A stretch of DNA of 64,000 nucleotides from Aplysia californica (lineage: Eukaryota). The notes beneath the pieces are model-generated. The model did not search any database. It was not told the DNA's origin and saw nothing but the letters and a program-made list of their open reading frames with translations. Shown here piece by piece: positions 2,793 to 28,733 of this stretch (the first letter of the stretch is position 1; the number at the start of each line of letters is the position of its first letter). The position numbers were made by a program, and so were the translations under genes. Location of the stretch: assembly GCF_000002075.1 (NCBI RefSeq), contig NW_004797730.1:187902-251901 (forward strand). Direction: 5' to 3'.

Positions 2793-4157
2793 ATGATGAA
2801 ATCTTTAACAAGTTTTACACACGAGGTGCCTCATCCAGAAAATGTTGTGTGGGCGCCTCCCGCATACGATGAGCAGCACCATTTGTTTTTTTCGCACGGG
2901 ACCGTCTTGATTGGTATCGTCGGGTCGTTGATCATTACTGTGGCAGTGGTAGGGAATGTTCTTGTCTGCTTGGCAATTTTCACAGAGCCTATTCTCTCCC
3001 ACAGCAAAAGCAACTTTTTTATCGTGTCCCTGGCAGTTGCTGACCTACTGCTCGCTCTCCTGGTCATGACGTTTGCTTTAGTCAACGACCTGTACGGTTA
3101 CTGGTTGTTTGGAGAAACCTTCTGCTTCATCTGGATGTCTGCAGACGTCATGTGCGAAACTGCGTCCATCTTCAGTATCTGTGTCATTAGTTACGATCGC
3201 CTGATGCAAGTGCAGAAGCCACTACATTATGAGGAGTTCATGACTACTACTCGGGCTCTTTTGATTATTGCTTGTTTGTGGATTTGTTCATTTGTCGTGT
3301 CTTTTGTACCAATATTTCTGGAGTGGCATGAGCTCTCTGTGGAAGAAATCAAGGCCATTTTCAAGGATAACAAAGCAGAAAAGGGAAAAGCCCTCGAAGC
3401 ACACACTTTTTCGTCTGCGCATAACCAAACGTTGGGAGTTAACAAAAAGTCGAACAGAAAACCGGAGTGCCTTTTTGATGTACATTTCACCTATTCGGTC
3501 ATCTATTCCTTTATTTGTTTCTACATCCCGTGCACCTTAATGCTGACAAATTACTTACGCCTGTTCTTAATTGCCAAAACGCACCAGGCCCGGATCCGGA
3601 GCCTCCAAATGACCATCCCTCCACAGCTTAGAGGTCAAGGGGCGAGCTCCTACCGGAACCAGGGAACACAAGGCAGTAAAGCAGCCCGGACTCTCACGAT
3701 CATCACAGGAACTTTCCTGGCGTGCTGGTTGCCTTTCTTTATCATCAACCCAATTGCCGCAGCAGATGAACACCTCATCCCACTGGAATGTTTCATGGTG
3801 ACCATTTGGCTCGGTTATTTCAATTCCTGCGTCAATCCTATCATCTATGGGACGTCCAACTCCAAATTCCGAGCAGCTTTCAAACGACTTTTGCGCTGTC
3901 GTTCAGTAAAGTCAGTTGTAGGCAGCATCTCTCCTGTTTCCCCGGCGTATCGGGCATTTTCGTGGATACGTCCCAGCCGCTTAGACCTGTCCTCAAGTGA
4001 ACACCCTAGTGACGCCTGTGATACAGGACGCGGTAAAAATAGTAAGGGAGGTGATTACGCCACTACTGACCCTACAAAGCCCGATGTCAGCGTCAGCGAA
4101 GAGATAATTTATGCTGGGACTAAGGTGTTCGAAAGCGATACAGCCTTCTCCTCATAA
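2793..4157 (+). CDS. Class A aminergic GPCR, 5-HTB1-like / invertebrate D1 (Dop1)-derived, copy 1 (454 aa, intronless CDS)
   Basis: Intact ORF with 7 hydrophobic segments and GN (TM1), SLAVADLL (TM2), D3.32 in WMSADVMC, DRL, W4.50, FYIP (TM5), CWLPFF (TM6) and WLGYFNS-NPIIY (TM7). Very close to the recalled Aplysia 5-HTB1 sequence. Confidence 0.96.
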   Translation: MMKSLTSFTHEVPHPENVVWAPPAYDEQHHLFFSHGTVLIGIVGSLIITVAVVGNVLVCLAIFTEPILSHSKSNFFIVSLAVADLLLALLVMTFALVNDLYGYWLFGETFCFIWMSADVMCETASIFSICVISYDRLMQVQKPLHYEEFMTTTRALLIIACLWICSFVVSFVPIFLEWHELSVEEIKAIFKDNKAEKGKALEAHTFSSAHNQTLGVNKKSNRKPECLFDVHFTYSVIYSFICFYIPCTLMLTNYLRLFLIAKTHQARIRSLQMTIPPQLRGQGASSYRNQGTQGSKAARTLTIITGTFLACWLPFFIINPIAAADEHLIPLECFMVTIWLGYFNSCVNPIIYGTSNSKFRAAFKRLLRCRSVKSVVGSISPVSPAYRAFSWIRPSRLDLSSSEHPSDACDTGRGKNSKGGDYATTDPTKPDVSVSEEIIYAGTKVFESDTAFSS

Positions 4158-4197
4158 AGCCATTTCTTTTGAAGTAAGCCTGGTCTGTGAAGTATTA

Positions 4198-4551
4198 TTT
4201 GTTTTGATACGTGTTTTACGGCACCCGCAATTGCATACGCTCATGGGAGTGCTTGGGCCATATTAAACATTTTCAGTTTGGTAGGAATTTTGAATTTTTG
4301 CCCGGGTGGTGACCGAAGCCTCCTCGTGTCGATTTTAAGACCACCAAGGGATCTCTAACGTGTGCAACTTGTACATTGGACCTCAATCATTTTTCGCCCT
4401 TATCCGAGAAGGCAAGGTGTTAGATCTTTACCTACCAGAAGATCAGGGGTGTGGCTGAAAGACAGCAGTAAGAAGGAGCAAAGGAGTAGCAATAGAAGGA
4501 GAGCAGAAATAGTCAGGAGCATAGACGAGTGGATAAATTGGAGAGGGAGGG
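4198..4551 (-). mobile_element. tRNA-derived SINE (Nin/Deu-domain type), 3' part, cut by an assembly gap
   Basis: Homologous to the full-length copy at 15663-16184; starts ~40 bp after the GPCR stop codon. Confidence 0.8.
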
Positions 4552-4663
4552 NNNNNNNNNNNNNNNNNNNNNNNNNNNNNNNNNNNNNNNNNNNNNNNNN
4601 NNNNNNNNNNNNNNNNNNNNNNNNNNNNNNNNNNNNNNNNNNNNNNNNNNNCACACACACACA

Positions 4664-4705
<42 letters not shown>

Positions 4706-6379
4706 TACAAACGCGCATACACNNNNNNNNNNNNNNNNNNNNNNNNNNNNNNNNNNNNNNNNNNNNNNNNNNNNNNNNNNNNNNNNNNNNNNNNNNNNNN
4801 NNNNNNNNNNNNNNNNNNNNNNNNNNNNNNNNNNNNNNNNNNNNNNNNNNNNNNNNNNNNNNNNNNNNNNNNNNNNNNNNNNNNNNNNNNNTGAACCAGG
4901 CACACACCCATGCCTCGTTGCAATTCACCATTACTATAGTGTGTCCTACCTAACTGTGCCACATTGGTAGCTTTCACCTCTCCGTGAAGGAAAATATGAC
5001 TGGCTCCGACTCTATTCAGATTGAGTATGTTTAACGCCCCTTTCTCCAGTGTAGGGTTTTGTAAGAGGTGGGACCTGCAAATCTAACATCCGTATTCTTT
5101 AGGATCGAGCCAAATGGGTACTGATCCTTAAAACACCCGCAAATCAATACGGCTCAGAGTTTCCCTTCGGGGGAATCAAACAAGGGCCATACGTTTTGTG
5201 TTCCGGCATAATACTAACTGAGGTAACGGAGCGCCCCTGACCATATCCCACGGATCAAAAGCACATGACAATATGTATCATCAAATGCCAAAATGCACTG
5301 GGTTCCCACTGTAACTGTATACGACACATGTCATGTATGGGGTAATTAATTAGCTTTCGATGTTTTGACTAGTCACATGACTGCTTCTACAAAATCAAAC
5401 TTTTTCATAAATATGTACTAGTGTGGTGCATGTCCGCATAATCTGAATATACGCATCACTCTGGTGCAAAAAGTCTAGAGTAAAGAGGCCAGTGTCTCCA
5501 ATGAAAATGCATGTCGTTCTCCTAAAACTACAACTACAGCATAATCGATCAATGAAGACTGAGGATTCTAATTTTGATAAACGTTTGTACTTTATTGTCT
5601 ACCTTGGTTTTCCGTGCTACGTTTTACATAGAGAGATAGAATGCACATCACTAGAACTGATGACGAAATACACGACATAAATGGTGGATGAAGGGCTTCC
5701 GCTCAAAAGAATTCAAATTGGTGGGTGTTTACATTATTACTGGGCAAGTTCTTCATCTAATCTGAAAAAACATTGAGAATATTATAATCTTGTCTCGATG
5801 TCTATCTTGTAAGTTATAGAAACGCCACATTTCATTTTAAATGTCTACTCTTGTCTGTGTCAGAATTTCTCTGGGCATGGCTGTGCTTGGTACTTCATAA
5901 TTCTTATCGTTTCGCAGAGAAGTTGGGCGTACATCTCTTCCTAATCTTCAGTGGGTGTACTTCCATGCTTTGTGGGTGGTAGCTGTTAGTTAGTAGACCG
6001 GGGGTAAATAAGCACGGTGAAGCCACATTTCACTAAAAACACTGGACAGCAAAATTGAGCTTTTTTCTGGGGCATGGAGTTTCAGACTTCATGTACAGTA
6101 ATTAGAGGTCGATGAAACAAAAAATGACATCCGTTTTGCTTTATCACGTCAAGTGTTTTTCTCTGTGTCATAACCCCTGTTTTGAGGTACACAATATTGA
6201 ATTAGCTGTAATAATAATAATAATAATAAACGCCAACTTTGTTCAGAGCAAACCGCTCCTCTGTCCCGAAAAATCTGAGGCGTCAAAATCAAAGTTTTTT
6301 TTTCATGTTATGTATAAATAGTGTCAGTCCTCTGTTTCACTATAGCAATGGGTACAACATTATGAATTAGTGTTTTTAA

Positions 6380-7350
6380 GTCGAAACCGATCTATTCATG
6401 ACAGAAACTTTCTTTTGCAGGATTGTCCAGAGTGTTTTTCATCTTGACAGTCTCTTTAAATGCTTCAACAGAAATGTACCATCGTGTTGATGTCTCAAAG
6501 GCCTTGAGGAAACTCTTTTTCATAATCGCAAAGTCTTTTTGAAATTTTTCACTTCGCTCATTACTGACATCACCAAAGTTTTGAGGAGAATCACGTTCTA
6601 CATTACTTAATGTAATAAATAACTATCCTCGATGCAAGTGTTACAGTCCAAACGATGAAAGTTTTGTAACAAATTTTGACTATGTTCTTGGTATTTTCTG
6701 CAGCTCTTTCGCCCCCCCCCCCAAATGTCCACCAAGAATCTGTGACCAGCTTTCTGATTTGGAAGGCATCGAAAAAACACCAACAACAACCCACAAGCCC
6801 TTTTTTTCTCGTAATAAAACTGAGATTAGGAAAAGTTGTAAGACATACTTGAAACAGTCTCCACTCAAAGTCCAGGGCTTTCCCGAATTGTTTCGTCAAG
6901 CATAATTGGATATGAAAGGGAGGAAAGACGATTTTTGGATCAACACAAGTGGTTCATTGACGACATTCCTCTCTCCAACAGCTAGAGCTGTCTTTACTTG
7001 TCAAATCTTTTGTTTCTAGAGTTTTTCCTTCACAGGCACCTATTGGTTAAGAAAGAATTTGACTATTTACTAATCAACACGAATCTTTTAGTCGTGGTTC
7101 CTATGTTCATGTCACTTCAGCATTATTGTTATGTGCCTGTATTCTTATTTAAGCAGAGCCGAGTAACCAATAGGAACGGACCCAAATGAATATCCAATAT
7201 AGCTTAGCACACGCTTCAGACTTCTCTTCGAGCTCTCCAAGAAAATGCTCGACTCAATCGGGTCGTAATCAGATACGTCCAATGTACGGAACAAACCTGG
7301 TATGTCGTGACAGAAGACAACGTCCTTGTCTGTTGCAAAGTACTGTGGTA
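6380..7350 (-). mobile_element. RTE-type LINE remnant upstream of GPCR copy 2
   Basis: Its ends match the 2095-2300 segment of the copy 1 remnant. The interior looks like decayed coding sequence with multiple stops. Confidence 0.55.
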
Positions 7351-8142
7351 GATCCTCTTCTGTACTGTGATAACGCTATCGTTACATCGTTTTTTGAACA
7401 TTTTTTTTTCTTTTGGCCTTGAAGCAAAAAAATTTGATAAACCGTTATCAAATAACCCAATTCTGGCTAACTAAAACAATTGGGATTTGAAGTCAATTTG
7501 ATTGAAAATTGTGCTTTCCGCCCTTATGCTTCTACACTACTTTTACAAAATCTCTAAACTCTGTTACTACGACAAAAAGCAGTTTTTAAAGACAATCTAA
7601 TACTGTAGCAAGATTTTTTAAAGAAACTGAAGGCTAAAATGGATAATGGTTTAGATAGATTATACCATTTTTGCTAGACACACACAAAGATATAGATCTA
7701 GATGTGTTTAATTACGTTTGTAGCTCAGAAACATAGGTTTAATTTAACTATTAGTGATAACCTACTAATTTTGGAGGAAAAGTCACACATTGATTAAAGT
7801 TCAACATGTTGTTCTGATTCAATAAAGTGAAGTACTGAATCAAACTAAAGGCTATTCTGTTTGACAATTCCTGAATTTTGTCATATTGACATAAAACCTA
7901 CCACTTTTACATATAGCAAATACTTGACGTGATACACAAAAGCTAATGCCTTGAGCCGCAACATTTGTGTTGATCAATGAAATAGTTTGAAGGTAACGAA
8001 GAAATTCAAAAGAGGTAGCAATTTTAACGGATAACCGTTACCATATACCCCTACTGCACTCAAACGCCTGACAAGTGACGTTGACTATGTTACAATCTCC
8101 TGTTACCAGTTCATAATGACATTAGTTTGAATCACAATAATT

Positions 8143-8580
8143 TGTGAGGCAGCGTGGTAGAATCAGGCACTCGTCAATTTTTGGGCGTGTAGAGTTATTG
8201 GTGTCATCTTAAAGCTAGTTCACTCTTCTTTATTTGAATGAAAAAATATCTATTTATCTTGAATACAAGTCAAGATATTTGCGAATGAAGAAGGTGGAGG
8301 TCACCTGTTTTCAGAGGTAAAATTAGTGAGAAAATTGCCGCCAAAGATTAGTTATTTCCTTAGCTTAAAGAGTCCGTGGTAACTGAAAATTTACATTTTT
8401 TGTTCCATCAACCAACGTTTTTAAAGACAAAACCACACAGAAGTGAGTTCTTGAATGGATATGGAAGGTGTTGAGCCAAAAAACAAAAATTTGATAAAAA
8501 TTCTCAAACTTGGGGAACAATGCAAGTTTCTTCACTTTGATTTTTTTGACAAGAGTCTGATTCCACCACGCTGCCTCACA
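8143..8580. mobile_element. MITE family A (438 bp)
   Basis: ~35-bp TIRs TGTGAGGCAGCGTGGT(G/A)GAATCAGGC(T/A)CTCGTCAA ... TTGAC(G/A)AGAG(C/T)CTGATTCCACCACGCTGCCTCACA; flanked TT/TT; non-coding. Confidence 0.93.
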
Positions 8581-8778
8581 TTTGTTTCCCTCCAGTGTCC
8601 GTGATCTTATGACATGTATAGCTGTATAAACTTCGAACATAAAAAATTTACAAGTACAAGATTGAAACTTACACAGAAACCGCAGTCTTGATCTGAGAAT
8701 TTCACAAGTTTTATTTTCTCTTTCCGTTTCCACCTAGGTGCAACAGACGGTGACAGATCCTTGCTTGTTGTCTTCACG

Positions 8779-9260
8779 ATGAAATCTTTAAAAAGTTCCA
8801 CACACGACGTGCCTCATCCAGAAAATGTTGTGTGGGCGCCTCCCGCATACGATGAACAGCACCACTTGTTTTTTTCGCACGGAACCGTCTTGATTGGTAT
8901 CGTCGGGTCGTTGATCATTACTGTGGCAGTGGTAGGAAATGTTCTTGTGTGCTTGGCAATTTTCACAGAGCCTATTCTCTCCCACAGCAAAAGCAACTTT
9001 TTTATCGTGTCCCTGGCAGTTGCCGACTTACTGCTCGCNNNNNNNNNNNNNNNNNNNNNNNNNNNNNNNNNNNNNNNNNNNNNNNNNNNNNNNNNNNNNN
9101 NNNNNNNNNNNNNNNNNNNNNNNNNNNNNNNNNNNNNNAAAATAGTAAGGGAGGTGATTGCGCCACAGCTGACCCTACAAAGCCCGATGTCAGCGTCAGC
9201 GAAGAGATAATTTACGCTGGGACTAAGGTGTTTGACAGCGATACAGCCTTCTCCTCATAA
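8779..9260 (+). CDS. 5HTB1: Aminergic GPCR copy 2, probably the Aplysia 5-HTB1 locus; middle ~1 kb missing in the gap 9039-9138
   Basis: N-terminus MKSLKSSTHDVPHPE... through TM2 before the gap, and C-terminus NSKGGDCATADPTKPDVSVSEEIIYAGTKVFDSDTAFSS* after it. Both ends match the 5-HTB1 termini as I recall them (not database-verified). Confidence 0.8.
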
Positions 9261-9298
9261 AGCCATTCCTTCTGAAGTAAGCCTGTTCTGAAAATTAT

Positions 9299-9749
9299 TG
9301 TTTGTTTGAATAAGTGTTTTACGGCACCCGCAATTGCATAAGCTCATAGGAGTGCTTGGGCCATATTAAACATTGTCAGTTTGCTAGAAATTTTGAATTT
9401 TTGCCCGAGTGGTGACCGAAGCCTCCTCGTGTTAGATGTTACCTACCACAAGATCAGGGGTGTGGCTGAAAGACAGCAGTAAGAAGGAGCCTAGAAGTAC
9501 CGTTAGCAATAGAAAGACTGCAGAAAGAGTCAGGAGCCTAGAGGAGTAGATAAATAGGAATGGGGGTGGGTGGGGGGGGGAAGTGTAGACGAAAGAATAC
9601 GGCAGAATATGGTTAGAGAGCCGGAAAGGATGGGGAAGGAGAACATTTAGGAGAAGAAAATTTTCCGTCCCTGAGTGATAGGTAATTTTGAACAAGGGAC
9701 GTATTGAATGAGAGTCGAACACAGTAACCCCTTGACCAGAAGAGACCCG
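9299..9749 (-). mobile_element. tRNA-derived SINE, internally deleted, in the 3' flank of copy 2
   Basis: Homologous to 15663-16184; same insertion site as the SINE behind copy 1. Confidence 0.8.
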
Positions 9750-10100
9750 ACTATGAATTAGTAGACTAAAGAAAACGATAAAATAAGAGCGACATAAGGC
9801 ACATGTTCACCCAGGTCAGCAGTCACTAAACAGCGCACGATGTTGGTAAATTATGTACAAACAACAATAGGTAGACCGGGAAAATCAACAGTTGGATGAT
9901 GCATTACGTTTGGAGCTTCTTTGATACCCCCCCCAAAACCCCCCCCCCCAGAAAANNNNNNNNNNNNNNNNNNNNNNNNNNNNNNNNNNNNNNNNNNNNN
10001 NNNNNNNNNNNNNNNNNNNNNNNNNNNNNNNNNNNNNNNNNNNNNNNNNNNNNNNNNNNNNNNNNNNNNNNNNNNNNNNNNNNNNNNNNNNNNNNNNNNN

Positions 10101-10863
10101 TGCTGACAAATTACTTACGCCTGTTCTTAATTGCCAAAACGCACCAAGTCCGGATCCGGAGCCTCCAAATGATCAACCCTCCACAGCTTAGAGGTCAAGG
10201 CGCGAGCTTCTACCGGAACCAGGGAACACAAGGCAGTAAAGCAGCCCGGACTCTCACGATCATCACAGGAACTTTCCTGGCGTGCTGGTTGCCTTTCTTT
10301 ATCATCAACCCAATTGCCGCAGTAGATGAACACCTNNNNNNNNNNNNNNNNNNNNNNNNNNNNNNNNNNNNNNNNNNNNNNNNNNNNNNNNNNNNNNNNN
10401 NNNNNNNNNNNNNNNNNNNNNNNNNNNNNNNNNNNCTTTCTTTATCATCAACCCAATTGCCGCAGTAGATGAACACCTCATCCCACTGGAATGTTTCATG
10501 GTGACCATTTGGCTCCGCTATTTTAACTCTTGCGCCAATGCTATCATCTATTGGGTATTCAACTCCAAATTTCGAGCTGCTTTCAAAAGACTTTTGCACT
10601 TGTATTCAGTAAAGGGAATTGTCAGCAGACTGTCGTTTTGCGCCTCGATTTATCGGGCATTTTCGTGGATACGGCCCAGCCACTTAGTCCTTTCTCTAAG
10701 CGTACACCCTAGTTATGTCTGTGATACAGGACATGATACAAATAGTAAGGAAGATGATTACGTCACAGTTGAACTTACAAAGCCCGATGTCAGCTTCGGC
10801 TTAGAAGAGGTAATTATGATATATTATGCTTGCACAAAGTTTTTCGAAAGCGATACAGTATAG
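10101..10863 (+). pseudogene. GPCR copy 2b: 3'-half fragments (end of TM5 to C-tail) with degenerate TM7; probable pseudogene or mis-assembled copy
   Basis: 10101-10335 encodes LTNYLRLFLIAKTHQVRI...CWLPFFIINPIAAVDEH. 10436-10863 encodes TM7 as WLRYFNSCANAIIYWVF, so WLGY became WLRY and NPxxY became NAxxY. No 5' half is visible and there are gaps at 9956-10100 and 10336-10435. Confidence 0.7.
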
Positions 10864-10999
10864 ATCTAATCTCGAAGACACCATTCCTTTATAGGGGAGC
10901 CTTGTTTATGAACTAGTAGACTGAAGAAAAGGTCAACATATATCAGAATCAAATCCAATTCAGCAATTACTAAACAGCGTATGATGTCGATAAACTATG

Positions 11000-11165
11000 A
11001 CAATGACAATGTTTATTAATCTCGAAGGGAGAAATTATTTTGTCTTGGTCGTTTGCAATGGCAGTAGATGCTACTAACTTCAGGTGCACTCACGCATACG
11101 CACAACACAACAGGACATTAGTAAATGCATGTCTCACGTGCTGAAACACGCGCTCCGTAAAACTA

Positions 11166-11219
<54 letters not shown>

Positions 11220-11780
11220 CCCTCTCTCTCTCAGTTTTATTTGCAGCATTGTGTGTTCAGTAACCTCTGTGCAGTTGGTACGAATGAATTTCTATATCTG
11301 TCTGTTCTTGCTCCTTTGGAAATGTATCGTTTACTGCGGGGTCGATAATTGAAAATTCTGATCTCAGTCGGTGGCTATGGTCACTTACCGTTATTTCCGC
11401 TTTTTAAAAAACTTTTGTTCTGTGCAGATATTCAAAGTTACTTAGGTCTCTACCAGTTGTTCCTGATGCCTTTCTGATCAATTTATTTATTTTTATGATG
11501 TGCTGTCTTTCCAAATGAGCAAAAAACCATAACCTAAAGGCGATACATAATGTCTGGAGCTTCTTTGATACCCCCCCCCCCTCCTTTTTTTCCTGAGACA
11601 CAAAAATAAAGAAAATAGAAACCATATTGGTGTGACTTCTTTTTGATTGCCTCTGGTGAAGCCTACTTCTAAACGTATTTACATGGGACGGGAATAGCTC
11701 AGTTGATAGCAAGAGGACCTACGGTGTGGATATAGCACAGATGCCTCTACCTACCTCGTCTACCGGTGAACTTCTTTTAA
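11000..11780 (-). mobile_element. Rex1/Babar-like LINE 3' fragment with internal (CT)n microsatellite (11170-11232)
   Basis: Minus-strand peptide YISKGARTDRYRNSFVPTAQRLLN resembles the Rex1-type ORF2 C-terminus. It is followed by a 3' UTR ending in AATAAA and a short repeat tail. Confidence 0.6.
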
Positions 11781-13765
11781 CAATGAGCCAGTGTTTGCGG
11801 CAGAAGATATTTGGAGACGTCTCCAGAGAGCACAAAGGAACTATTCGGAGATGTACTCCCGCACACTAGTGACACAGATGCACTGCTTTGGGGGTCAAAC
11901 TGCGTATTGTTTACCGAAGATCAGACACATATGTATCTAAAACTGTCGCAAATCAATTATTTTCTGGAACATTTCAAACCTAACTGCAAAACATCAAATT
12001 ATGTGTAAAACCTGGACGGGGGGAAACCACCCCCCCTCCCTCCCCCAGATTTTTAAAACTTGGTCCAGAGGCACTTAAACTTTACTTAAAGCATTTTGAT
12101 TGGACAATGTCTTCCAATAGATATTGTGTGAGTTTGCATTTTTATTCTCGCCTCACCAGTTAAAACAAACAGTTTGCACGTGACCATGTTAAGTGTCCGG
12201 AATGCTGTGAAAGTAACTCTGCATTTACAAATCAGGAGATCCCACCTGCTGGTCGAATCTCAGGTACCACACCCAAGAGTTGTTTCATGGCCGCGGCGAA
12301 TTTCTAGAAATTACAATAACGGTTCTTTTGTATGCTTGACAAGCCTACTTTTCTTAAAGTGACTTCCCCTTAGGCCAAAGAAACTATAATTTCTTTTATT
12401 GTTCAACACCGCGATGATGGTAGTTGTTTTCGGCACGTGTCATTTCGAGTTTCTTCAACTTGGTTTTTGATTTGTTTTAGGGGGGGGGGGGGGGGGTGTT
12501 TTGAAGCTATCTTGCGCCTTGCTGATATGGTAATATTTTTTTTAACGGTAATAGCACAAGTGTAGAGAACCCAACCTCCATAACTATACGTTTTGTTCAT
12601 ACTTTAAATATATTATAGGCGGAATCATTTTCAACGGAAAAACATGTGTTGTCCTGCTGAAGTTATGGCAAGTCCGTCGTCTGACCTAGAGCGGCCAGGC
12701 ATGACCGAGATGACGTCAATGCTCAATAGTTGTAACCTGAAAGTGGCTCATAGCGAGACAATTTCAAAGGGCGAATTTGGCATACTGAGTTGTCAACATT
12801 TAGAGTCATTTTGATTACTACTGGACCCATAAAAGTTAAGAACACATCTAGCTATATTTAAGAAGATTTACCCGACTAAACCTCCTCCCCCCCCCGGCAA
12901 CTTCTCAGTCATCTCTGAAGTACGTTTTCGCTCCTTAGTGATATACATGTATTCCTTCTCTCCATGAACTCTATGTTATTAGCTGATGTTCCTGAACTTT
13001 ATTTTCTGTATGTCATTGCTCAGAACAGCATTTCCTGTTTGTTTGTTTATTTCTTTGTTTGTTTGTTTGTATTTTTGGCTTTTAATTTTAGAGAAGCTCG
13101 CCAACATGGTGGCGGTCCTTTCGTGGAGGGGAAAAGATACGACAGAACAACACAGACAGAAACATCGTAAATGAACAGATGGACTTTCTACCTGAAAACT
13201 AATTTTTCAATCCCTGTGAACAAAACGCTAAATTATTATTATACAAATTACGCTATAGAAATTTAGATCTTATCGAGACAGACCCCTCTTTTTAGGAGTA
13301 TTTGTGATATAAAAAAAAATCTTGACTATACCAAATTTGGCGAAAGATCATCATGAAAAAGAACTTGACAGAAGGCGAAGTAAATACAAAAAGAAAGATA
13401 CCATCTCTGCATCTTGTTGTGTGTGAAGAAGACTCTAGAATGTCATGTTGAAAATGCTTTAACTTTAACTTAAGTGTGTAACTAGTGTAAAGCAGTAGCT
13501 TTACTCGTAGTATCTGTTGAGTTTTTGTTCGGAGAGCGTTTTAATATTTCTAAGGGCAAATACTTTGAACACATTAAAAAAATCGTCAGTTCCATCCTGA
13601 CTTACTTTTTTACTTTTCACTGTTTCCGCCCTGACTCGAATCGGAACACGTCTGCTGGGACATTTTAGTAACCCATTTTCAGCACTTTTCAAGAACCCCC
13701 GAGCAGATGTTGAGTTCCTGCGTGCTGTCGGCATCGCTGACCGTTTAAGACGCCACAGCGCCATA

Positions 13766-13890: not shown

Positions 13891-13941
<51 letters not shown>
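13766..13941. repeat. (GA)n microsatellite spanning an assembly gap
   Basis: Direct observation. Confidence 0.95.
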
Positions 13942-13943
<2 letters not shown>

Positions 13944-14480: not shown

Positions 14481-14506
14481 TTCAAGCCTAACAAACATAA
14501 CAAATA

Positions 14507-14944
14507 TGTGAGGTAGCGTGGTGGAATCAGGCTCTCGTCAAAATAATCAAAGTGACGAAATTTGCATTTTTCCGCAAGTTTGTGAATTTTTATCAAATTT
14601 TAGTTTTTTGGCCCAACACCTTTTATGCCCATTAAAGAACTAATTTCTGTGTGGATTTTTCTGAAAAATGTTGATTAAAGGCACAAAAAAAGTAAATTTT
14701 CAGTTACCACAGACTCTTAAGCTAAGGAAAAAAACTCATCTTTGGCGGCCATTTTCTAACTAATTTTACCTCTGAAAACAGGTGACTCCCACCTCCTTCT
14801 TTTGCAAATATCTCGACTTGTATTCAAGATTAATGGATATTTTTTTCATCCGAATAAAGACAAGTGAACAAGCTTTAGGATGATTTCAATAACCCTACAT
14901 GCCCAAAAATTGACGAGAGCCTGATTCCACCACGCTGCCTCACA
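14507..14944. mobile_element. MITE family A
   Basis: Same TIRs, 438 bp, flanked TA/TA, opposite orientation to the 8143 copy. Confidence 0.93.
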
Positions 14945-14980
14945 TATGGCGTTAACAACACTCTGAGGAAAGGGATCAAA

Positions 14981-17688: not shown

Positions 17689-19062
17689 ATGGAATCTTTG
17701 ACCACATTAACACACGAGGTGCCTCATCCAGAAAATGTTGTGTGGGCTCCTCCTGCATACGATGAACAGCACCACTTGTTTTTTTCGCACGGGCCCGTCT
17801 TGATTGGTATCGTCGGGTCGTTGATCATTACTGTGGCAATGGTAGGAAATGTTCTTGTGTGCTTGGCAATTTTCACAGAGCCTATTCTCTCCCACAGCAG
17901 AAGCAACTTTTTTATCGTGTCCCTGGCAGTTGCCGACTTACTGCTCGCTCTCCTGGTCATGACGTTTGCCTTAGTCAACGACCTGTACGGTTACTGGTTG
18001 TTTGGAGAAACCGTCTGCTTCATCTGGATGTCTGCAGACGTGATGTGCGAAACTGCGTCCATCTTCAGTATCTGTGCCATTAGCTACGATCGCTTGAAGC
18101 AAGTACAGAAGCCACTTCATTATGAGGAGTTCATGACTACTACTCGGGCTCTTTTGATAATTGCTTGTTTGTGGATTTGTTCATTTGTCGGGTCTTTTGT
18201 ACCAATATTTCTGGAATGGCATGAGCGATCAGTGGAAGAAATCAAAGCCAATTTCAAAGGTAGCGGTTCGGACAAAGACCGAGTCAAGAAAAAAGCTGCT
18301 GAAGCACAGACGTTTTCGCCCACTTCAAATCAAAGTTCGGGAGCCGTGCAAAAACTGAACACAAAACCCGAGTGTCTTTTCGATGTACACTTCACCTGCT
18401 CGGTTATCTATTCCTTTATTTGTTTTTATATCCCGTGCACAATAATGCTCACGAACTACTTCCGCCTGTTTTTAATTGCCCGTAAACATCGGCACCGGAT
18501 AAACAGCATCAAACCCCAAGTGAATGGCGGTGTACAACAGCCCAGAAGTCAAAGGACTAGCTTCAACCGGAAATGTGGAGTGCGTGGCAGTAAAGCAGCC
18601 CGGACTCTCACGATCATCACAGGAACTTTCCTGGCGTGCTGGCTGCCCTTCTTCATCATCAACCCAATTGCTGCAATAGATGAGCACCTCATCCCATTGG
18701 AATATTTCATGGTGACCATATGGCTTGGCTATTTCAATTCTTGCGTCAATCCCATCATTTATGGGACTTCCAACTCTAAATTCCGAGCTGCTTTCAAACG
18801 CCTTCTCGGTTGTCGTTCTGTTAGGGGAAATGTTCGCGGCTTCTCCCCCCGCAGATCTATTTATAGGGCGTTCTCGTGGATACAGCCCAGCCGCTTAGAC
18901 TTCACGCCAAGTCGACGCTGTAGTAGGACGGTTAGCTGTAGTTTCCACTCAGATACACGAGAGGTGGACAAGAACAGCGATGGAGGCAATAGTGTCAAAG
19001 CTGAACCCTCAAAGTCCGAGGTCATCATAACTGAACAGGAATCCTCATATAACTCCTCCTAA
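17689..19062 (+). CDS. Aminergic GPCR copy 3 (457 aa, intronless CDS)
   Basis: Intact ORF with the same 7TM motifs as copy 1; distinct ECL2, ICL3 and C-tail. Confidence 0.95.
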   Translation: MESLTTLTHEVPHPENVVWAPPAYDEQHHLFFSHGPVLIGIVGSLIITVAMVGNVLVCLAIFTEPILSHSRSNFFIVSLAVADLLLALLVMTFALVNDLYGYWLFGETVCFIWMSADVMCETASIFSICAISYDRLKQVQKPLHYEEFMTTTRALLIIACLWICSFVGSFVPIFLEWHERSVEEIKANFKGSGSDKDRVKKKAAEAQTFSPTSNQSSGAVQKLNTKPECLFDVHFTCSVIYSFICFYIPCTIMLTNYFRLFLIARKHRHRINSIKPQVNGGVQQPRSQRTSFNRKCGVRGSKAARTLTIITGTFLACWLPFFIINPIAAIDEHLIPLEYFMVTIWLGYFNSCVNPIIYGTSNSKFRAAFKRLLGCRSVRGNVRGFSPRRSIYRAFSWIQPSRLDFTPSRRCSRTVSCSFHSDTREVDKNSDGGNSVKAEPSKSEVIITEQESSYNSS

Positions 19063-19246: not shown

Positions 19247-20761
19247 TACTCGCCGGCAAAAGTAATGCGAAGTCGCATGACACAAGAAGAGGAGAGTAAA
19301 TTGAAGCAATATTTGTATTAAGAGAAACAGGTTTGAGGTGTCTCAGTTTGCACAAAACATTGCTTGAGAGTTGGGGGTTTGCTTAGGGGCAGATTTTGTT
19401 ATTCGGCATCAATGACCTTGACCTTGGGGCTTTAGTTCCAGTCAGTATCCAGTATGGCCCCCATTAGCGTTGATGACACCAGTGCCTCGGGGGGTACATA
19501 GAGTGGACCAAGCGATTGATTTGGCAGTCGGGGACCTGCACCCGCTCCTGAAAAATAGCAGCACCCAGTAGTACAGCTGTCCGGGGTCTGGGCTGGAGTT
19601 GATTGAGACGCCTCTGAAGGATCCCAAAGGTGTTCTATTGGGTTCACATCTGGTGATCGGGGTTGGTTAGGCATGGTGGGCATGTTGTTTTGTACCAGGA
19701 ACTGCTGGGTAGCACGTGCTGTATGAGGCCGGGCATATCCTGCTGAAAGAGATGGTTTTGATGTCGCTGGAAAAATGGAGCAACATGGGGCTGCAGGACT
19801 TGATTGATGTAGCCCTGCGCCGTCATTCCGTTGTCACATCCAGGTCCTAAATGTTGGAATATTATGGAACCCAGTCTTTGACTGATACCGATTGCGCCCC
19901 ATATCATCACGCTTTGACCTCACCCACGGGTCTCTCTCCCAGATGTTCTCGTCAGAGTAGCGTTGTCCGGAGAGGGCCAAATTCGGACCCGTCTATTGTC
20001 AGAATCGATGCAGAAGCGACTCTCGTCACTGAAGATCACACAATGCCACTGTCGATGAGGCCAGTTAACGGGGTTCTGAGCCCACTGGAGACAAGCTCGT
20101 CGATGATGGACGTTCAGGGATGCTCTCTGCTCCGGACCACGACAATGCAGCCCCTGGCCACAAGTCGGCGGCGTATGGTGCGGTCACTCACGACTCTATC
20201 GTGCGTTCCTATGGTGTTCTGGGCTGTCTCGGAGGCAGACAACCGTGGATCTCGGCGATGCTGACGCACGACGAAGCGGTCTTAGGCAGCTGTTGTCAGC
20301 TGAGGTCTTCTGCTTCTTTGGAGATCTCTCGTGGAGTTGGTTGCCTGGAATCTGTTTTACGGGCGGTAGATAGTGCTGCTGCTGGCATGCACTCGTAGGA
20401 CTGTAGTCACTTGCTGAGGGCTCGTGCCGGCTTGCAGACATCCAATAGCTCTTTCTCGATTTTCCCGTACCAAAAACTCTCTGGTCGTACTTTGTAACAC
20501 TCAATCCCAGACCAATTTAACATGTGAGCAAGAATTCACGACTCAATTCACGTTTTAATTGCATACCACTGAGAGGGTTACTTTGTTGTATTGTTTGATG
20601 CATAATGAGCGGCCAATGAGCATGTTGTGTTTTTTAAATGGAGCCAATCCAATAACAAGAACACATTGCGAATAGAGACAAATGAAAACAACTCACGAAA
20701 ATACTCAGTTTTGTTTTCTACACATGGTGTTACTTTTTCGCGTTATTTATGCGGGTCAGTA
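19247..20761 (-). mobile_element. Tc1-family DNA transposon, near full length, transposase decayed
   Basis: Imperfect TIRs TACTCGCCGGCAAAAGTAATGCGAA / TACTGACCCGCATAAATAACGCGAA with TA flanks. Minus-strand peptides WHCVIFSDESRFC, MIWGAI, LFQQD and SPDVNPIEHLWD cover the DDE triad but lie in different frames. Confidence 0.9.
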
Positions 20762-21304
20762 TATAATAATATTATTAAATGTCCCCTACACGAATGTTTG
20801 ATTTAAAAAAGCAACAAAAAACAAACAAACAACCAAACAACAAAGCAAACAAGAAAAAAAAAATAGGGTAAAAAGAAGAATACAACAAAAGACAATGCTC
20901 ACAGTGAGCAGACCTTGAAATAAAACCTTAATACATTTCTGTTTGCAGGGTAACAACACCGTTTTAAGATAAACAAGTCGAATAGTGACTCCTCTCTTCC
21001 CCCCCCCCCCAAAAAAAAAAAAATCTGTTAAAAATAGCAGGAAACCAAATGAATAAAAATGGAAATAAAAGTCTGTACCCGACTTAATTTTTTCATAACG
21101 ATTTCTCAGTTACAACTGTTGCACGTATACGTTGCTCCTCTGCGTTCGTTACAACATTCTAATACATCGGCATCGTCCCTGATCTTTTCTCTCCTTTTTG
21201 TTCAGAACGATCTTTCCCTCTTGTATACTAGTTTGTACTTTTATATTCAGACATGTGCATCACTATTAATTATTACTATGACGATCCGTTTGTGAAGAAG
21301 GAAA

Positions 21305-21482
21305 GTGGGTGGTTGGCGGGTGCTCTGGTGTGGTTTGCTCCTTCTTTCCTATCAAACATCTATCGTCTTTATCTCCCCTCCTTCTTTTTTGTGTTTGTTA
21401 CTCTCTTGTAACGCCTCTAATCTTCGGCACTTATATGACCTTATTGTGTTGCAAGTGCCGTAAAACTCTTACGAAAACTAAA
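21305..21482 (+). mobile_element. Short 5'-truncated LINE 3' UTR fragment with the stem-loop tail shared with the SINE
   Basis: Further copies at 23266-23445 (-), 57621-57780 (-) and 31833-31995 (+). Ends in TATGACC...GCCGTAAAAC plus (ACTAAA)n-like sequence. Confidence 0.7.
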
Positions 21483-21507
21483 AAAGAAGAAGGAAACTTG
21501 AAAACAG

Positions 21508-21618
21508 ACATCATCATCCGGTGCCTTGCCGACTGGCGTAGGCGATCATGGACCTCCACTTCACCCTGTCCTGCGCTACAGCAATGGTGTCTGTTGTTCT
21601 TGCTGCTCCCAACCATGT
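21508..21618 (-). mobile_element. RTE LINE extreme 3' end with (GAT)n tail
   Basis: Near-identical copy at 37019-37129; the minus strand ends ...GGCAAGGCACCGGATGATGATG. Confidence 0.65.
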
Positions 21619-22092
21619 CGTCGTCTTGTCCTGTATTTTTTCCCTCTGTCTGCCTCTGCCTCTGCCTCTGCCTCTGCCTCTCTTTCCAATCTTTGTTTAT
21701 TGAAGTGTTATGATCCATAATGTTCTAGGGAAAGAATACAGCAGTGGTTTTCCCTTGCCTTCTGCTAGATTTGTGTACGGTTTACTCCACTAGCCTTTGT
21801 CCAAAAGGACTAACCCACAAGGCAGTGGCGGCAGGTGGCAGGTTTCGGCGCCTACCTCTCGCCTGACAGTCTCTTTACTGAGCACATGAGGTATTTTATA
21901 GAGACAGGATTGCCACCACCCTGTTCCACCTCGCACTCCAAGACAACAGACACACAGACATAATATCATAAGGTATCAAAAGAAGTAAAGCCCAATTTGC
22001 AACTACCTTCCCCCCCTCCTTTTATTCCCCTTGAATGTCTTGCAAGTTTCGTTGAGTGAGACTGAGATGCACTTTGGGGAAGACAATAAAAT

Positions 22093-22530
22093 TGTGAGGC
22101 AGCGTGGTGGAATCAGGCTCTCGTCAAAATAATCAAAGTGAAGAAACTTGCATTTTTTCGCAGGTTTGTGAATTTTTATCAAAGTTTTGATTTTTGGCTC
22201 AACACCTTTCATGCCCATTAAAGAACTCATTTCTGTGTCGATTTTTTTGCAAAACGTTGATTTAAGGCACAACATAATGTAAATTTTCAGTTACCACGAA
22301 CTCTTAAGCTAAGGAAATAGCTAATCTTTGGTGGCCATTTTCTCACTAATTTTACTTCTGAAAACAGGTGACCCCCACCTCCTTCATTCGAAAATATCTC
22401 AGCGTGTATTCAAGATAAATGGATATTGTTTTCATCCAAATAAAGATAAGTGAACAAGCTTTAAGATGATACCAATAACTCCACATGCCCAAAAATTGAC
22501 GAGAGCCTGATTCCACCACGCTGCCTCACA
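22093..22530. mobile_element. MITE family A
   Basis: Perfect TIRs, 438 bp. Confidence 0.93.
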
Positions 22531-23873
22531 ACTATTGAAAAAGCGAAAACATGTTCAAGAGTAAAAGTACAATAATGTAGTGCAGAGCCCTGATGAAAGC
22601 TCCAGTGTCACTGTAGTATGTTAACACCTTCACCGAACAGATTACTTCCGGAAACGAAGGTTTCTTTCTTTTGACCAGCATCAATAAAACGTATTTCCAA
22701 ATACAAATTTCAATACAGTTCTAGGTCATTTTAATTATAGAGGAACCACATTTTCTATGGTAAGCCCTGCTCCGGGCTCTTATTCGCCCTCTCTACAAGA
22801 AGCCTTTATAGCAGAAGGGTCCTGCCACTTTCTCAGAACGTTCAGTTTATCGCGGAAAAAAAGCTCTCCAGGGTGGGTATTGTCGTCAGCAATTTTTTGC
22901 CCCCAGTGCAAAGAGCAAAGAGAAGTATCGAGTACGCATTAAAATAAAACGAATTTCAAATACACAGATTGTTCAGTTGCTCAGGATAAAATGGAAAACG
23001 GGAGCAACAAGTATTGCCAGAACGTGGCTGTTAGACTTCATACACTTCAAAAGCCAATGTCTACTCAGCTCAAATCGATGACAATATCATGTTACCGATT
23101 TACGTATTTGCAGAAATAAAAAGTGTTGTAATGATGATGTATAGGCCAAAAGCTTTTGAAATCAGGAAAATCATTTTGAAATACGCTCTCTTTGGGTTTT
23201 TTAAAATATTTTCACTTTTTCCTAGATTGAATCCTGGCTCCAAAAAAATAGAAATTAGAGAAGTGTTTAGTTTTAGTAGAGGTTTTACGGCGCTCGCAAC
23301 TGCATAAGGTCATATGAGCGCCAGAAGATTAGAGGTGTTACAAGAGAGTAACAAACATAAAAAAGAAGGAGGGGAGATAAGGACGATATATTTTTTTATA
23401 GGAAAGAAGAAGCAAACCACACCAGAGCACCCGCCAACCACCCACTAGAGAAGTGGCCAAACGGAAAAGTAATAGGCCTGGAGAAGAAATATGCCATTCT
23501 TTTATGCCAAGGAGATTATACTAGTTGTTATAGCGTATGTGAAGCAACACAGCAGATGGGTAATGCTTGGATAACTGACTACATGTATACATGTATTATT
23601 TAGCCCTAACGAAAAAGCTTCAGTATGTCACAGTATGTGAGCCAGAGGCCAAACCTGTACAGGTAGCACTAGCTCCTATTTGGTTGGGTTTTTAAAAAAA
23701 GGAAAACGTTCTGGTACTTGTGCTGTAGATAATATGTACGTCAATGAGCGCATGTAAGACAAACTATTAGTTCAGAGCCGAATAAATAGGCCTATTTTGC
23801 TATCCAGACTAGACATCTTGGCTGCTTCTAAAAGATCAAGATCAAATAGTTCACCATGGTATGCTTCTGCCTT

Positions 23874-25105
23874 GGGGGCTCCTCTGGTCTAGAGGTCCGG
23901 TGTTCACCTCTCTTTCAACAGGACCGGGGTTCGAAACCTGACAACGACGGAAAAGTTTCTTCTTTAAAAAGAGATCATTTCACCTTTCCTGCTCTACCGT
24001 CTGTTTTTTTCTCTCCACTTTCTGTCCCCCCCCCCCCCCCGTTTGGCCCCCTCCTCTGGGCTCCTGACTCTTTCTGCTGCCTTTCTACTGCTACTCCTTG
24101 GCTCCCTCCTACTGCTATTTTTCAGTCACACCCCTTATGAGGAGGTGGAGGTGGTAAGTTCTTAAAAGTACCTGTATCTTGAAATAACAATTGATAACAA
24201 GCTTGACTGGCATCTCCACGCTGCCCTTGTGCATAAAAGGTAAATCAAAGAATGATTCTTTTTTTTATGGAAATTAAGAAGTCTTCGTGTCGATAATAAG
24301 ATTAAGACCCTTTTATACCATCCAACGATTGAAAGCGTGCTATTATTTTGTATTTGCTGCTGGGCAGGGAATTGTGGGGTGAAAGATAAAGAAAACTTCG
24401 ATAGAACCATTACGAAAGATCCCTGGATATGATTTTACTAGAATTGATGAAATGTAGAACACCACATGTATAAAAAAAGATAAAAGTATTATAAACGACC
24501 TATCACACCCTTTTTCCACGCAAATTGTAAGAGCACGCAGCGGCAGATATGTTCCTCTGAAACAAAGAACGTTTTTTACCATCTAGCATAGGGCTATTGT
24601 CAGAATAAGCATCAATGTGAAGAATATTGCTCTTTCGAGTATGAATCTCTATAACTCCTAAGGTCTTGTATTTAAATTCCTGCATGTGGTTGAATGATGC
24701 ATCTGGTGTGATATGTGCATTTTGTCAGCTTTACTTCTCTTTTCATATTGAATTTTAATGAGAGTAATATATAATTTAATTATTTAAAAGAATACCTGCT
24801 TGTGTTTTTACGGTCCTCTACAGCCAAAAATAATTTCCGTCTGGGACAATAAAGTATTACACGTATCTTATCTTATCTTGGGATAGGTAAATTCTAACAT
24901 CTTGCCTCTCAGGCTCTTGTTGGAGATCCTGAGAGCCAGTTGTGCAAGTTAAAGTTTCCTTGGTGGTCCTAAATTCGATAGGAGTAGGCTTCGGCTGCCA
25001 CCGGGGCAAAATTCAAAATTAATTCCGACCAAACTGCACTAAATGCTTTGAGTGTTCCCCGCGCTCATGTGACCTCATTATGCAGTTTGGAGCGTCGTAA
25101 AACAC
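23874..25105 (+). mobile_element. tRNA-derived SINE split by a nested Rex1-like LINE 3' fragment (~24160-24880)
   Basis: SINE head and body at 23874-24137 resume at ~24885-25105. The insert translates to KYL...IDNKLDWHLH...LFLWKLRSLRVD...IESVLLFCICCWAGN and ends in AATAAA + (ATCTT)n. Confidence 0.78.
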
Positions 25106-27389
25106 TTAGATTTGTTTTAGTAGATGTTTTACGGCGCTCGCAACTGCATGAGGTTTATACAGTTGCGAGCGCCGTAAAACAAGGTCATATGAGCGCCAAG
25201 GGGTGGATGTCAACAGAGGAGTCGTTACAGAGAATCAGACTTACTCTGCTCACCTCTCCAGCTTCAACAGCACAAAGTCCGCTTCGACTATCACTATATC
25301 AAGGCACCCTGGAAACAGCGGGCTACAATAGTGTGACAAACATACAAAAGAAGTAGAGGAAAATGACAATAGTAAGTATTAGGAAAGAAAAAGCAGCAGC
25401 TCCCTGGTGCAGGTCAGGCACAGTTATGAGCGTGACATTGTTGGATCAGCCCATTTACAATTCCAATTCTACTGATAACGCCCCCTCCCCTTTTGGGAAT
25501 GGCCCTAACGACACTATAGTCANNNNNNNNNNNNNNNNNNNNNNNNNNNNNNNNNNNNNNNNNNNNNNNNNNNNNNNNNNNNNNNNNNNNNNNNNNNNNN
25601 NNNNNNNNNNNNNNNNNNNNNNGGGGTTACTTAGTTGTGCAATAAAGCTGAACAAACGCATTACACTGTAACGAAACAGTATATTATTAAAGTGGGTGAT
25701 TTCCCATAAAAAGTTCATTTCTTCAATAACACAGCCTACCCTAGCTCTACTAGCAGATCTTAAAATGAAGTATGCAACACCGGAAATTACGACAGGCAAT
25801 ACAAACGTTCGAATAAACAACAGCATTGGCTTTTCCATTGCACTGTCTGCCTTACATAATTAATTTTCCTGTGTTACATTTTAACCTGCAATGCAAATGG
25901 AAAATGGCTGAAAGTGATGACGAAGTGCACGGTGCACAAATACATTATGGCTGAAAAAGGAAAAGGGTTTGACTTTCGCTCAGAAGTACAGAAATCTGTG
26001 GGTCTTATATGAATTTTGGTCATGAGAAGCTCTTCGACAACTTAAAAGGCATTCTATGGATGTGGTCTGATCGCATTGTCACCATGTTTACCCTGCATCA
26101 ATAGAGTATTCCTTTTTGTACCCTCTGTTGATGTTTATGTTGTACTGTCTTGGTGCGTGGCTGTGTATGAGGCTGATCCTGAAAACCCATGACGTTTATC
26201 AGAGAAGAAGAGTTTTCAGCAAAGAGTAGACTACATCTCTTCCACATCGAGTGTCTGTGCACTTTGCTGCTTTGTATGTAGTAAAGTTTAGTTCGTGGAT
26301 CACGGTAAGTTCAGTGAAGCCACATTTAACCTAAACAAGATAAGACAGCAGACATTGAAAAGCGATTGAACTGAATAACCTCAGCAGAGTTCATCGTCTA
26401 CTCAAACACTCTCATGCACGACTTTAACCGCAACAATTGCCTAGGAATCAGAAAGATGGACTCAAGTCCAGTTAAAAATGACATATATTATATACTGAAA
26501 CCTTATCCCCCCCCCCCTTTCACACTTTTTTATGAGCAAGATTTTACAACTAGAGATAGGCAAAATGGCGATCGGTGAATGATCGTGACAAAATTGAGTG
26601 GGTCATCTTGCCTGTATCTTGCTTCCAATTACTGTTTACAGTAGTGCGCTTTAAGAAATTGAGTTTACAAATTGCTGTCCTTAATCTGGAATATGAATGC
26701 ATTAGGTAAGCGAACCAATAAATGATAGCTATCTATTAAATGCGGATGTTAAAATCGGGCATCGAATCGGATTTCAGCGTTCTGCCGATGGGGATTCATG
26801 GAATCACCCCGACCCATAGGCCTTCATTTTCAACACATCAGCGCTCCCCTTGTATCTAGATCTAATTGATTACAATGTAGAATCTACACGTGTTATCAAG
26901 TCAGCTTTATGGCCATTTTTTGGTGACACATTATCTTTATTTTGAAAAATTAGATGTCTATTATTACTGTAAAGAATAGTCCTAAAAATAACGGGTTTTT
27001 TGAGTCAGCTGTCCCTGAAAATGGCGTTTTTCATGTTGCAGCTCGATGTCCACAAAACTATAATATTATTCTAGTTAAAATATTCCCAGGTCCTTTGAAT
27101 ATCACCCCGTCGCAAAAAATCTGGTATCGAAATGCAGAGAAAGAAAATGCCTATTAATCTCACGTTTAAATATATGTAAACATTTAGTATTGAGTACGGT
27201 ACCAATTACAACTTCATGAGCTTCTAGAATTTGCCTGCACATGGCTGAAATTATAAAAGTACACAGATACAGTGGCCTTTTCTAAGATTTAAAAAAAAAC
27301 CCAACTACTTGCATTTTCTCTTTACAGATCGGGGAAGAAAGCTGGGAAAAGGACAGTGACTAGTGTTACTCTATATTCAAGTGTCCACG

Positions 27390-28733
27390 ATGGAAACTTC
27401 TGAAAAGAGTGCACATGGATTGCCCCACACAGAAAATGTTGTGTGGGCGCCTCCCGCATACGATGAACAGCACCACTTGTTTTTTTCTCACGGAACCGTC
27501 TTGATTGGTATCGTCGGGTCGTTGATCATTACTGTGGCAGTGGTAGGAAATATTCTTGTGTGCTTGGCAATTTTCACAGAGCCTATTCTCTCCCACAGCA
27601 AAAGCAACTTTTTTATCGTGTCCCTGGCAGTTGCCGACTTACTGCTCGCTCTCCTGGTCATGACGTTTGCTTTAGTCAACGACCTGTACGGTTACTGGTT
27701 GTTTGGAGAAACCGTCTGCTTCATCTGGATGTCTGCAGACGTCATGTGCGAAACAGCGTCCATCTTCAGTATCTGTGTCATTAGTTACGATCGCCTGAAG
27801 CAAGTGCAGAAGCCCCTACTTTACGAGGAATTTATGACTGCCACTCGGGCTCTTTCGATTATTGCTTCATTGTGGATTTGTTCATTTGTCGTGTCTTTTG
27901 TACCAATATTTCTGGAATGGCATGAGCTCTCGGTGGAAGAAATCAAAGCCATTTTCAAGGGTCGCAATCCATACAAAGACACGGTCAAGGAAAATGTCAC
28001 CAATGTACATAAGCCTAATTTTTCTTCTGTACTCAAACAAACTTTGAGAACTGAACAAAAAGTGACCACAAAACCCGAGTGTCTTTTTGACGTGCATTTC
28101 ACCTACTCCGTCGTCTATTCCTTCATTTGTTTCTACATACCGTGCACCTTAATGCTGACAAATTACTTACGCCTCTTTTTAATTGCCCGAAAACATCGGC
28201 ACCGGATCAAGAGCCTCGAGAAGACCAGCCTTCCACAGCCCGGCGATGAAGGGCCACGCTCCCACCGTAAACGCTCATCACAAGGCAGTAAAGCAGCCCG
28301 GACTCTCACGATCATCACAGGAACTTTCATGGCGTGCTGGTTGCCTTTCTTTATCATCAACCCAATTGCCGCAGTAGATGAACACCTCATCCCACTGGAA
28401 TGTTTCATGGTGACCATTTGGCTCGGTTATTTTAATTCTTGCATCAATCCCATTATCTATGGGACGTCCAACTCCAAATTCCGAGCAGCTTTCAAACGAC
28501 TTCTGCGCTGTCGTTCTGTAAGGGAAAACGTTGGAAACGTCACCCGCAATAGTTCGGTGTACAGGGCGTTCTCATGGATACGACCCAGCCTCATAGAGGA
28601 AGGCTTAACACAAGGCCAATGCTGTAGCAGTAGTCGTCGCGCCTTTGACAAAGGACAAGATCAAACCAGCGTTGGGGTTGATTACGTCATAGATGATTTC
28701 CCAGCACCCCAGGCCATCATCGCAGAACTTTGA
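27390..28733 (+). CDS. Aminergic GPCR copy 4 (447 aa, intronless CDS)
   Basis: Intact ORF. The ATG at 27390 is homologous to the starts of the other copies (the ORF-track start at 27363 is a GTG). All 7TM motifs present. Confidence 0.95.
   Translation: METSEKSAHGLPHTENVVWAPPAYDEQHHLFFSHGTVLIGIVGSLIITVAVVGNILVCLAIFTEPILSHSKSNFFIVSLAVADLLLALLVMTFALVNDLYGYWLFGETVCFIWMSADVMCETASIFSICVISYDRLKQVQKPLLYEEFMTATRALSIIASLWICSFVVSFVPIFLEWHELSVEEIKAIFKGRNPYKDTVKENVTNVHKPNFSSVLKQTLRTEQKVTTKPECLFDVHFTYSVVYSFICFYIPCTLMLTNYLRLFLIARKHRHRIKSLEKTSLPQPGDEGPRSHRKRSSQGSKAARTLTIITGTFMACWLPFFIINPIAAVDEHLIPLECFMVTIWLGYFNSCINPIIYGTSNSKFRAAFKRLLRCRSVRENVGNVTRNSSVYRAFSWIRPSLIEEGLTQGQCCSSSRRAFDKGQDQTSVGVDYVIDDFPAPQAIIAEL

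Follow-up and report, generated by a model that had tools for sequence, protein, structure and literature searches.

Origin, binding pocket and copy map of the tandem B-receptor array of Aplysia californica

A stretch of 64,000 nt of the Aplysia californica genome (C460:187902-251901, where C460 is the scaffold; hereafter the window, with coordinates without prefix as window positions) carries part of a tandem array of genes for G protein-coupled receptors (GPCRs) that includes the receptors named 5-HTB1 (Q16950, 5HTB1_APLCA) and 5-HTB2 (Q16951, 5HTB2_APLCA). Sequence comparison supports the view that this family, the B receptors, is a lineage-restricted tandem expansion of a receptor derived from a dopamine D1 receptor, and its members are best read as an orphan amine receptor that has neofunctionalised and comes in variants by tissue or by signalling. 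The expansion itself is not new, a D1-derived family of seven members having been reported in 2016. In the accessible parts of that paper (Farah et al. 2016; PMC5176290), the seven B receptors are placed on consecutive genomic loci, probably the product of gene duplication, and the Aplysia D1 receptor is named as their probable source; those parts contain no analysis of the pocket or of gene conversion.

Organization and origin of the array

A whole-genome search found seven plus-strand loci within ~40 kb of C460, four of them complete as assembled, two cut by gaps and one a decayed fragment, and an off-array member on scaffold C1008, which is a frameshifted, truncated pseudogene. Copies 1-5 are numbered by their starts in the window (2793, 8779, ~10101, 17689 and 27390). 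The features below use the abbreviations ORF (open reading frame), TM (transmembrane helix) and ICL3 (third intracellular loop).

2793/2796-4157, + strand: copy 1, intact receptor ORF (B3), 453 aa from the second ATG, 94.7% identity to 5-HTB1
8779..9038, + strand: copy 2, 5' piece of the 5-HTB1 gene (Q16950), codons 1-86, 85/86 aa identical, stops at an assembly gap
9139..9260, + strand: copy 2, 3' piece, 5-HTB1 residues 415-453 and stop, 39/39 aa identical
10101..10335, + strand: TM5-ICL3-TM6 fragment flanked by two gaps, 97% nucleotide identity to copy 1, 4/77 aa different from 5-HTB1
10436..10863, + strand: copy 3, 3' part, damaged TM7 (G7.42R, NPxxY to NAIIY), not in the 2016 table
17689..19062, + strand: copy 4, intact ORF, 457 aa (B5)
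27390..28733, + strand: copy 5, intact ORF, 447 aa (B4)
C460:182560-183921, + strand: B6, intact, left of the window (whole-genome search)
C460:176458-177347, + strand: left-hand gap-cut copy (B1 of Farah et al.), 5' third in a gap, 97% identity to 5-HTB2

The names B1 and B3-B7 follow Farah et al., whose S5 Table contig offsets (PMC5176290), when counted from gap edges, land inside the copies, with exact primer matches; three copy-diagnostic primers fall within the ORFs. Accordingly, B3 starts at 2793, B5 at 17689, B4 at 27390, B6 at C460:182560 and B1 at C460:176458, and B7 is the C1008 pseudogene. The PF00001 (7tm_1) domain was found in the three intact window ORFs, and identity to Q16950/Q16951 is 70-95%.

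The initial annotation, made from the letters of the window, had described at least five same-strand copies with three intact ORFs and had supposed that the array might continue to the left, and both points hold. Equally sound were the match of copy 2 to 5-HTB1 at both termini and the description of the copies at 17689 and 27390 as divergent: they share 74-75% identity with 5-HTB1 and 70% with 5-HTB2 and have their own second extracellular loop (ECL2), ICL3 and carboxy-terminal tail (C-tail). Homologous DNA does precede four copies, though it amounts to just ~75 nt at 27390. The copy placed at ~10101 exists, but only as a fragment with a damaged TM7; the genes are intronless as far as their coding sequence is concerned, but an acceptor-like site lies 41-46 nt ahead of the ATG in three copies; and the count of more copies than the two cloned receptors is right, with seven loci, but not new.

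On its sequence, copy 2 is the 5-HTB1 gene, because both of its ends match Q16950 almost perfectly. The gap between them (9039-9138) lies between codon 86 and residue 415 and should hold ~980 coding nt. Its 100 Ns are therefore a placeholder of the wrong length, and no reading frame can be followed through them. Gap 9956-10100 has non-coding DNA to its left and the middle of TM5 to its right; thus the 5' half of copy 3 is absent from the assembly. The two sides of gap 10336-10435 have 43 identical letters in common, which makes continuity of copy 3 plausible, yet copy 5 carries this 43-mer exactly too and the join is therefore unproven. The fragment 10101..10335 is either the left part of copy 3 or a wrongly placed piece of another copy. 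That it is the misplaced middle of copy 2 is not favoured, as 4/77 of its residues differ from 5-HTB1 against 1/125 at the termini of copy 2. The right piece of copy 3 is probably a pseudogene, given G7.42R and the broken NPxxY motif. Copy 8779, the UniProt 5-HTB1, and the decayed copy at 10101-10863 are both additions to the published table.

The intact copies are paralogues, not alleles. They differ from one another at 12-36% of synonymous sites and by 12-15% in their neutral flanks, far more than the ~0.3-3.5% that separates a second sample from the assembly at copy 5. It is thus extremely improbable that the array is mostly an assembly artefact, with alleles or haplotigs set in tandem. The region does contain six gaps (the three not described above are intergenic and adjoin CT/AG microsatellites), the gap in copy 2 has much less than the required length and copy 3 is broken up; moreover, another scaffold, C245, holds two D1b copies with 99.5% identity over 3.7 kb next to 100-N gaps, and duplication of this kind may therefore occur in the assembly. 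For the intact copies, however, this origin is ruled out by the silent-site and flank divergence, cDNA was amplified with copy-specific primers and B4 was cloned (PMC5176290), and the artefact would reach at most the fragment 10101-10335.

Outside the family, all best matches are to Dop1/D1-like receptors of molluscs (41-46% identity). In the two protein collections searched, the range between 51% and 69% identity to the family holds nothing from any other species, and no orthologue was found there. In a mixture-model tree, which included no trace amine-associated receptor (TAAR) row, the B clade is nested within the heterobranch D1 clade with support of 100/100, on a stem branch of 1.7-2.5 changes per site. 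The nearest relatives are mollusc Dop1 receptors, and orthology to vertebrate TAARs is not supported. When the Aplysia D1 gene itself was set against an earlier heterobranch duplication as the source, the approximately unbiased (AU) test gave p = 0.205.

Binding pocket and sequence evolution

The pocket of six full-length B receptors was compared with 46 other rows, with residues numbered by alignment. Across the six, 34/37 pocket and motif positions are identical, and the three that vary are single changes of the 4.56, 5.38 and 6.58 type. The class A aminergic signature is present (7tm_1, D3.32, W7.40, Y7.43), with DRL in place of DRY and with NPxxY lost in copy 3. All six receptors keep D3.32, W6.48, F6.51, F6.52, N6.55, W7.40 and Y7.43, and S5.43 is kept as well. 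E3.36, Y5.42 and C5.46 also occur in all six and in none of the 46 other rows. The catechol serines of Dop1/D1-like receptors are not all conserved: nearly every D1-like row has serine at 5.42 and 5.46, but all B copies have lost both and read Y5.42, S5.43, C5.46. Because it is S5.42 and S5.46 that hold the catechol ring, dopamine is improbable as a ligand. E3.36 lies one turn beneath D3.32, which hints at a ligand that carries a further group, basic or polar.

The ratio of nonsynonymous to synonymous change (dN/dS) is 0.04 in TM5, 0.08 from TM6 to helix 8 (H8) and 0.19 in TM1-4; it is 0.47 in ECL2, 0.83 in ICL3 and 0.57 in the C-tail, the loop values resting on an uncertain alignment. TM1-4 and TM5 are equally conserved at the protein level. 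At four-fold silent sites, however, 10/57 vary in TM1-4 as compared with 8/13 in TM5 (Fisher p = 0.003). The much lower silent variation in TM1-4 points to gene conversion there, and TM6-7 has probably been converted as well. In TM5, silent sites vary and yet the protein is conserved, which shows that its pocket residues are held by selection and not by conversion.

Proposed function, alternatives and transcription

These observations show that a copy of a heterobranch Dop1/D1-like GPCR changed rapidly on a single long branch and acquired a new pocket (S3.36E, S5.42Y, S5.46C and T7.39I), with the seven residues listed above as kept in all six receptors retained. Tandem duplication of 5-10 kb units then amplified this receptor; gene conversion homogenises TM1-4 and probably TM6-7, purifying selection keeps TM5 in place, and ECL2, ICL3 and the C-tail drift. 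The intact copies would all bind one small cationic amine, probably neither dopamine nor serotonin (5-HT). The most plausible candidate is a compound whose second group, basic or polar, would face E3.36; that it is a histamine-, agmatine- or polyamine-like molecule is a guess. Signalling would probably proceed through Gs, as in the D1 parent, and the copies may differ mainly in their site of expression, in the central nervous system (CNS) or the reproductive tract, and in coupling and desensitisation through ICL3 and the C-tail. The probability that the family shares a non-catechol amine ligand and Gs coupling and divides its labour by tissue and cytoplasmic regions is put at roughly 0.7.

Several B copies are transcribed, as is shown mainly by the data of Farah et al. 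(PMC5176290). Reverse transcription PCR (RT-PCR) detected B2-B6 in CNS cDNA and B4 was cloned from cDNA; both divergent copies of the window are thus among those amplified, so that the refuting condition named in the initial annotation, a lack of any transcript from them, does not hold. Sequencing reads were compared with a gap-free stretch of 4.5 kb, and tissue is not labelled for the runs concerned (X7, X16, X17 and X8), of which X7 is RNA by guess. Contigs of X7 cover the C-tail specific to copy 5, and others agree with B6 and copy 1 at every letter. Continuous low-depth X7 contigs extend ~850 nt past the stop of copy 5 and likely mark its 3' untranslated region (UTR); no X7 contigs were found across 26404-27309, upstream of the same copy.

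28734..29585, + strand: putative 3' UTR of copy 5

One 580-nt X7 contig at B6 (L035:3514-4937 = C460:182514-183937) links TM7 to an N-terminal piece that agrees with B6 throughout (0/171 mismatches). Provided that the first piece begins at letter 1 of the contig, 351 letters separate the two pieces. This is the sum of what is left of the B6 coding sequence, the 16 nt up to a donor-like site, a 46-nt leader and 40 nt, and it makes the contig exactly as long as a back-splice from that donor to the acceptor 46 nt ahead of the ATG would require. The contig comes from a single run and the match is known from length and positions, not letters; it is a lead only, either to a back-spliced circular RNA of the B6 coding exon or to splicing between adjacent copies.

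Several points weigh against the proposed function. The pocket numbering comes from alignment, not from a structure. Gene conversion alone can keep the TM2-3 pocket residues with no need for selection. The polyA RNA-seq runs X16 and X17 have essentially no reads on any B copy, which, with their tissue unlabelled, is uninformative. Finally, the published assay (PMC5176290), which favours the proposal in that B2 and B4 gave no translocation of the protein kinase C (PKC) Apl II upon 5-HT, had PKC as its only read-out (n = 3), so that 5-HT or dopamine may still act through cAMP.

This last point bears directly on the idea that the B receptors are still receptors for a monoamine (5-HT, dopamine or octopamine) acting through cAMP, with the copies mainly adding dosage. 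The retained D3.32, S5.43, F6.51, F6.52, N6.55 and Y7.43 would suit such a ligand, and cAMP was not part of the published read-out. Yet both serines at 5.42 and 5.46 are gone from every copy, 5-HT receptors are not the ancestors of the family, and the original 5-HT data have been put down to receptors that the cell line itself expresses (PMC5176290), so that this explanation appears doubtful. A chemosensory family resembling TAARs, derived from a dopamine receptor and with every paralogue responding to a waterborne amine or pheromone of its own, is very unlikely. Its attraction lies in the tandem, lineage-restricted, single-coding-exon genes with pseudogenes among them and in ECL2, which lines the pocket entry and is invariant at just 14/46 columns. 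The second acid of the pocket recalls the diamine-sensing TAARs, which use an aspartate in TM5. A sensory repertoire, however, would be expected to vary the pocket, which is here nearly fixed among paralogues, and the B family varies the loops of coupling and desensitisation instead. The dN/dS of ECL2 gives no sign of positive selection, and the family has only 7-8 loci as compared with a published count of 547 lineage-specific sequences of class A in Aplysia (PMC11886862). By the RT-PCR data cited above most members are found in the CNS, and 5-HTB1 has been reported from the reproductive system. Of the two evolutionary proposals in the initial annotation, the lineage-specific expansion from a dopamine receptor is supported, and the TAAR-like chemosensory role is poorly supported. 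A broader alternative, also rather unlikely, is that the sea-hare lineage built from a dopamine receptor either an independent TAAR-like system for amines or pheromones or receptors for a transmitter that has no known molluscan GPCR, possibly a di-cation, histamine- or polyamine-like, that D3.32 would bind together with the new E3.36.

The reading as a neofunctionalised orphan amine receptor has practical consequences. Databases still label the B receptors, which are orphans, as 5-HT receptors, and the fixed E3.36/Y5.42/C5.46 pocket offers a concrete entry point for deorphanisation. A new ligand, if true, would be a clear case of an amine receptor changing its specificity in a classic model of neuroscience.

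Flanking DNA, related receptors and known systems

Copies 1 and 2 share two upstream blocks, the second of which is an old interspersed repeat at the same position in both; a miniature inverted-repeat transposable element (MITE) was later inserted upstream of copy 2 only. This element belongs to a 444-nt family with terminal inverted repeats of 35-38 nt and eight window copies at 87-91% identity; older copies lie near 44712 and 56557.

490-1558 ~ 5212-6301: upstream block shared by copies 1 and 2, 88%
2141-2689 ~ 7208-7735: second shared upstream block, old interspersed repeat, 85%
2730..2795, + strand: pyrimidine tract, AG acceptor-like site (consensus) and 46-nt leader ahead of the ATG; copy 2 has this site at 8737/8738
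4158..4180, + strand: donor-like GTAAG (consensus) 16 nt past the stop, kept in copies 1, 2 and B6 (there as GTAAA)
8140-8581, 14504-14947, 22093-22530, 34369-34812: MITE copies
49288-49730, 50012-50462, 59358-59799, 60255-60696: MITE copies, continued

Elsewhere in the window, a helix-turn-helix (HTH) fragment (HTH_38, HTH_23) at 48147-48482 on the plus strand resembles the N-terminus of a Tc1/mariner transposase, and a 72-nt unit is repeated in tandem at 54586-54788 (2.8 copies, 97% matches). No tRNA was found in the 64 kb. The RefSeq 'uncharacterized protein' XP_005105304.2 (P0121; 925 aa) equals B6 joined to window 2793-4157. It was treated as a gene-model fusion and not as a genuine double receptor, because B6 and copy 1 are each a complete ORF with their own start and stop. 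P0001 likewise joins neighbours, namely copy 1 and the 10101 fragment.

The D1-like parent has itself multiplied (G000:C245:75903-83229 and 121432-122781; L036-L038). Two copies on C245 have identical coding sequence and may be the assembly duplicate mentioned above; their inverted paralogue is the cloned ApD1, identical in its first 58 residues, and a partial extra N-terminus is also present. A more distant relative lies on the minus strand of scaffold C81 (L041:4863-6116; G000:C81), an uninterrupted GPCR of 417 aa with Glu at 3.32 that is closest to heterobranch D1 receptors (33%) and for which no orthologue was found. It appears to be a second, far more diverged D1 derivative, and its grouping with the B clade may reflect long-branch attraction. 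Littorina saxatilis has three additional Dop1-like genes (among P0068, P0071, P0074 and P0042), whose contigs all have one length (55.5 Mb), and Elysia crispata a divergent one with C5.42 and G5.46; Dop1 duplication may thus recur in gastropods. A 241-nt B-family contig of run X8, placed at 27553-27790 and coded as from an organism B, matches the family at 98-99% but no assembled copy exactly (3-6 differences), a hint that another taxon or population also has the family.

Among known systems, the published B1-B7 receptors (PMC5176290) are the same genes as the array. The published table is without the gap-split copy 8779 (Q16950) and the fragments 10101-10863, both present in the array. The locus called 'B1' there shares 97% identity with Q16951 (5-HTB2), so that names clash with those in UniProt, and the paper's B3 reverse primer matches exactly in B6 and the 10101 fragment as well; the copy map given here corrects these ambiguities of naming and primers. 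The nearest relatives, the Dop1/D1-like receptors (Aplysia NP_001191631.1 and XP_005100402.1), have the same pocket residues in TM2, TM6 and TM7, and the coding sequence is uninterrupted in both. The B receptors differ from them by the four pocket substitutions given above (at 3.36, 5.42, 5.46 and 7.39), by the change of DRY to DRL and by their long stem, and their array sits in tandem on a different scaffold.

Vertebrate TAARs are likewise derivatives of an amine receptor that occur as clustered genes with a single coding exon, include pseudogenes and keep D3.32, features in which the B receptors agree with them. TAARs, however, descend from a 5-HT4-like ancestor, whereas the B receptors come from Dop1, and the pocket of the B receptors, unlike that expected of a TAAR-like family, is not diversified among paralogues.

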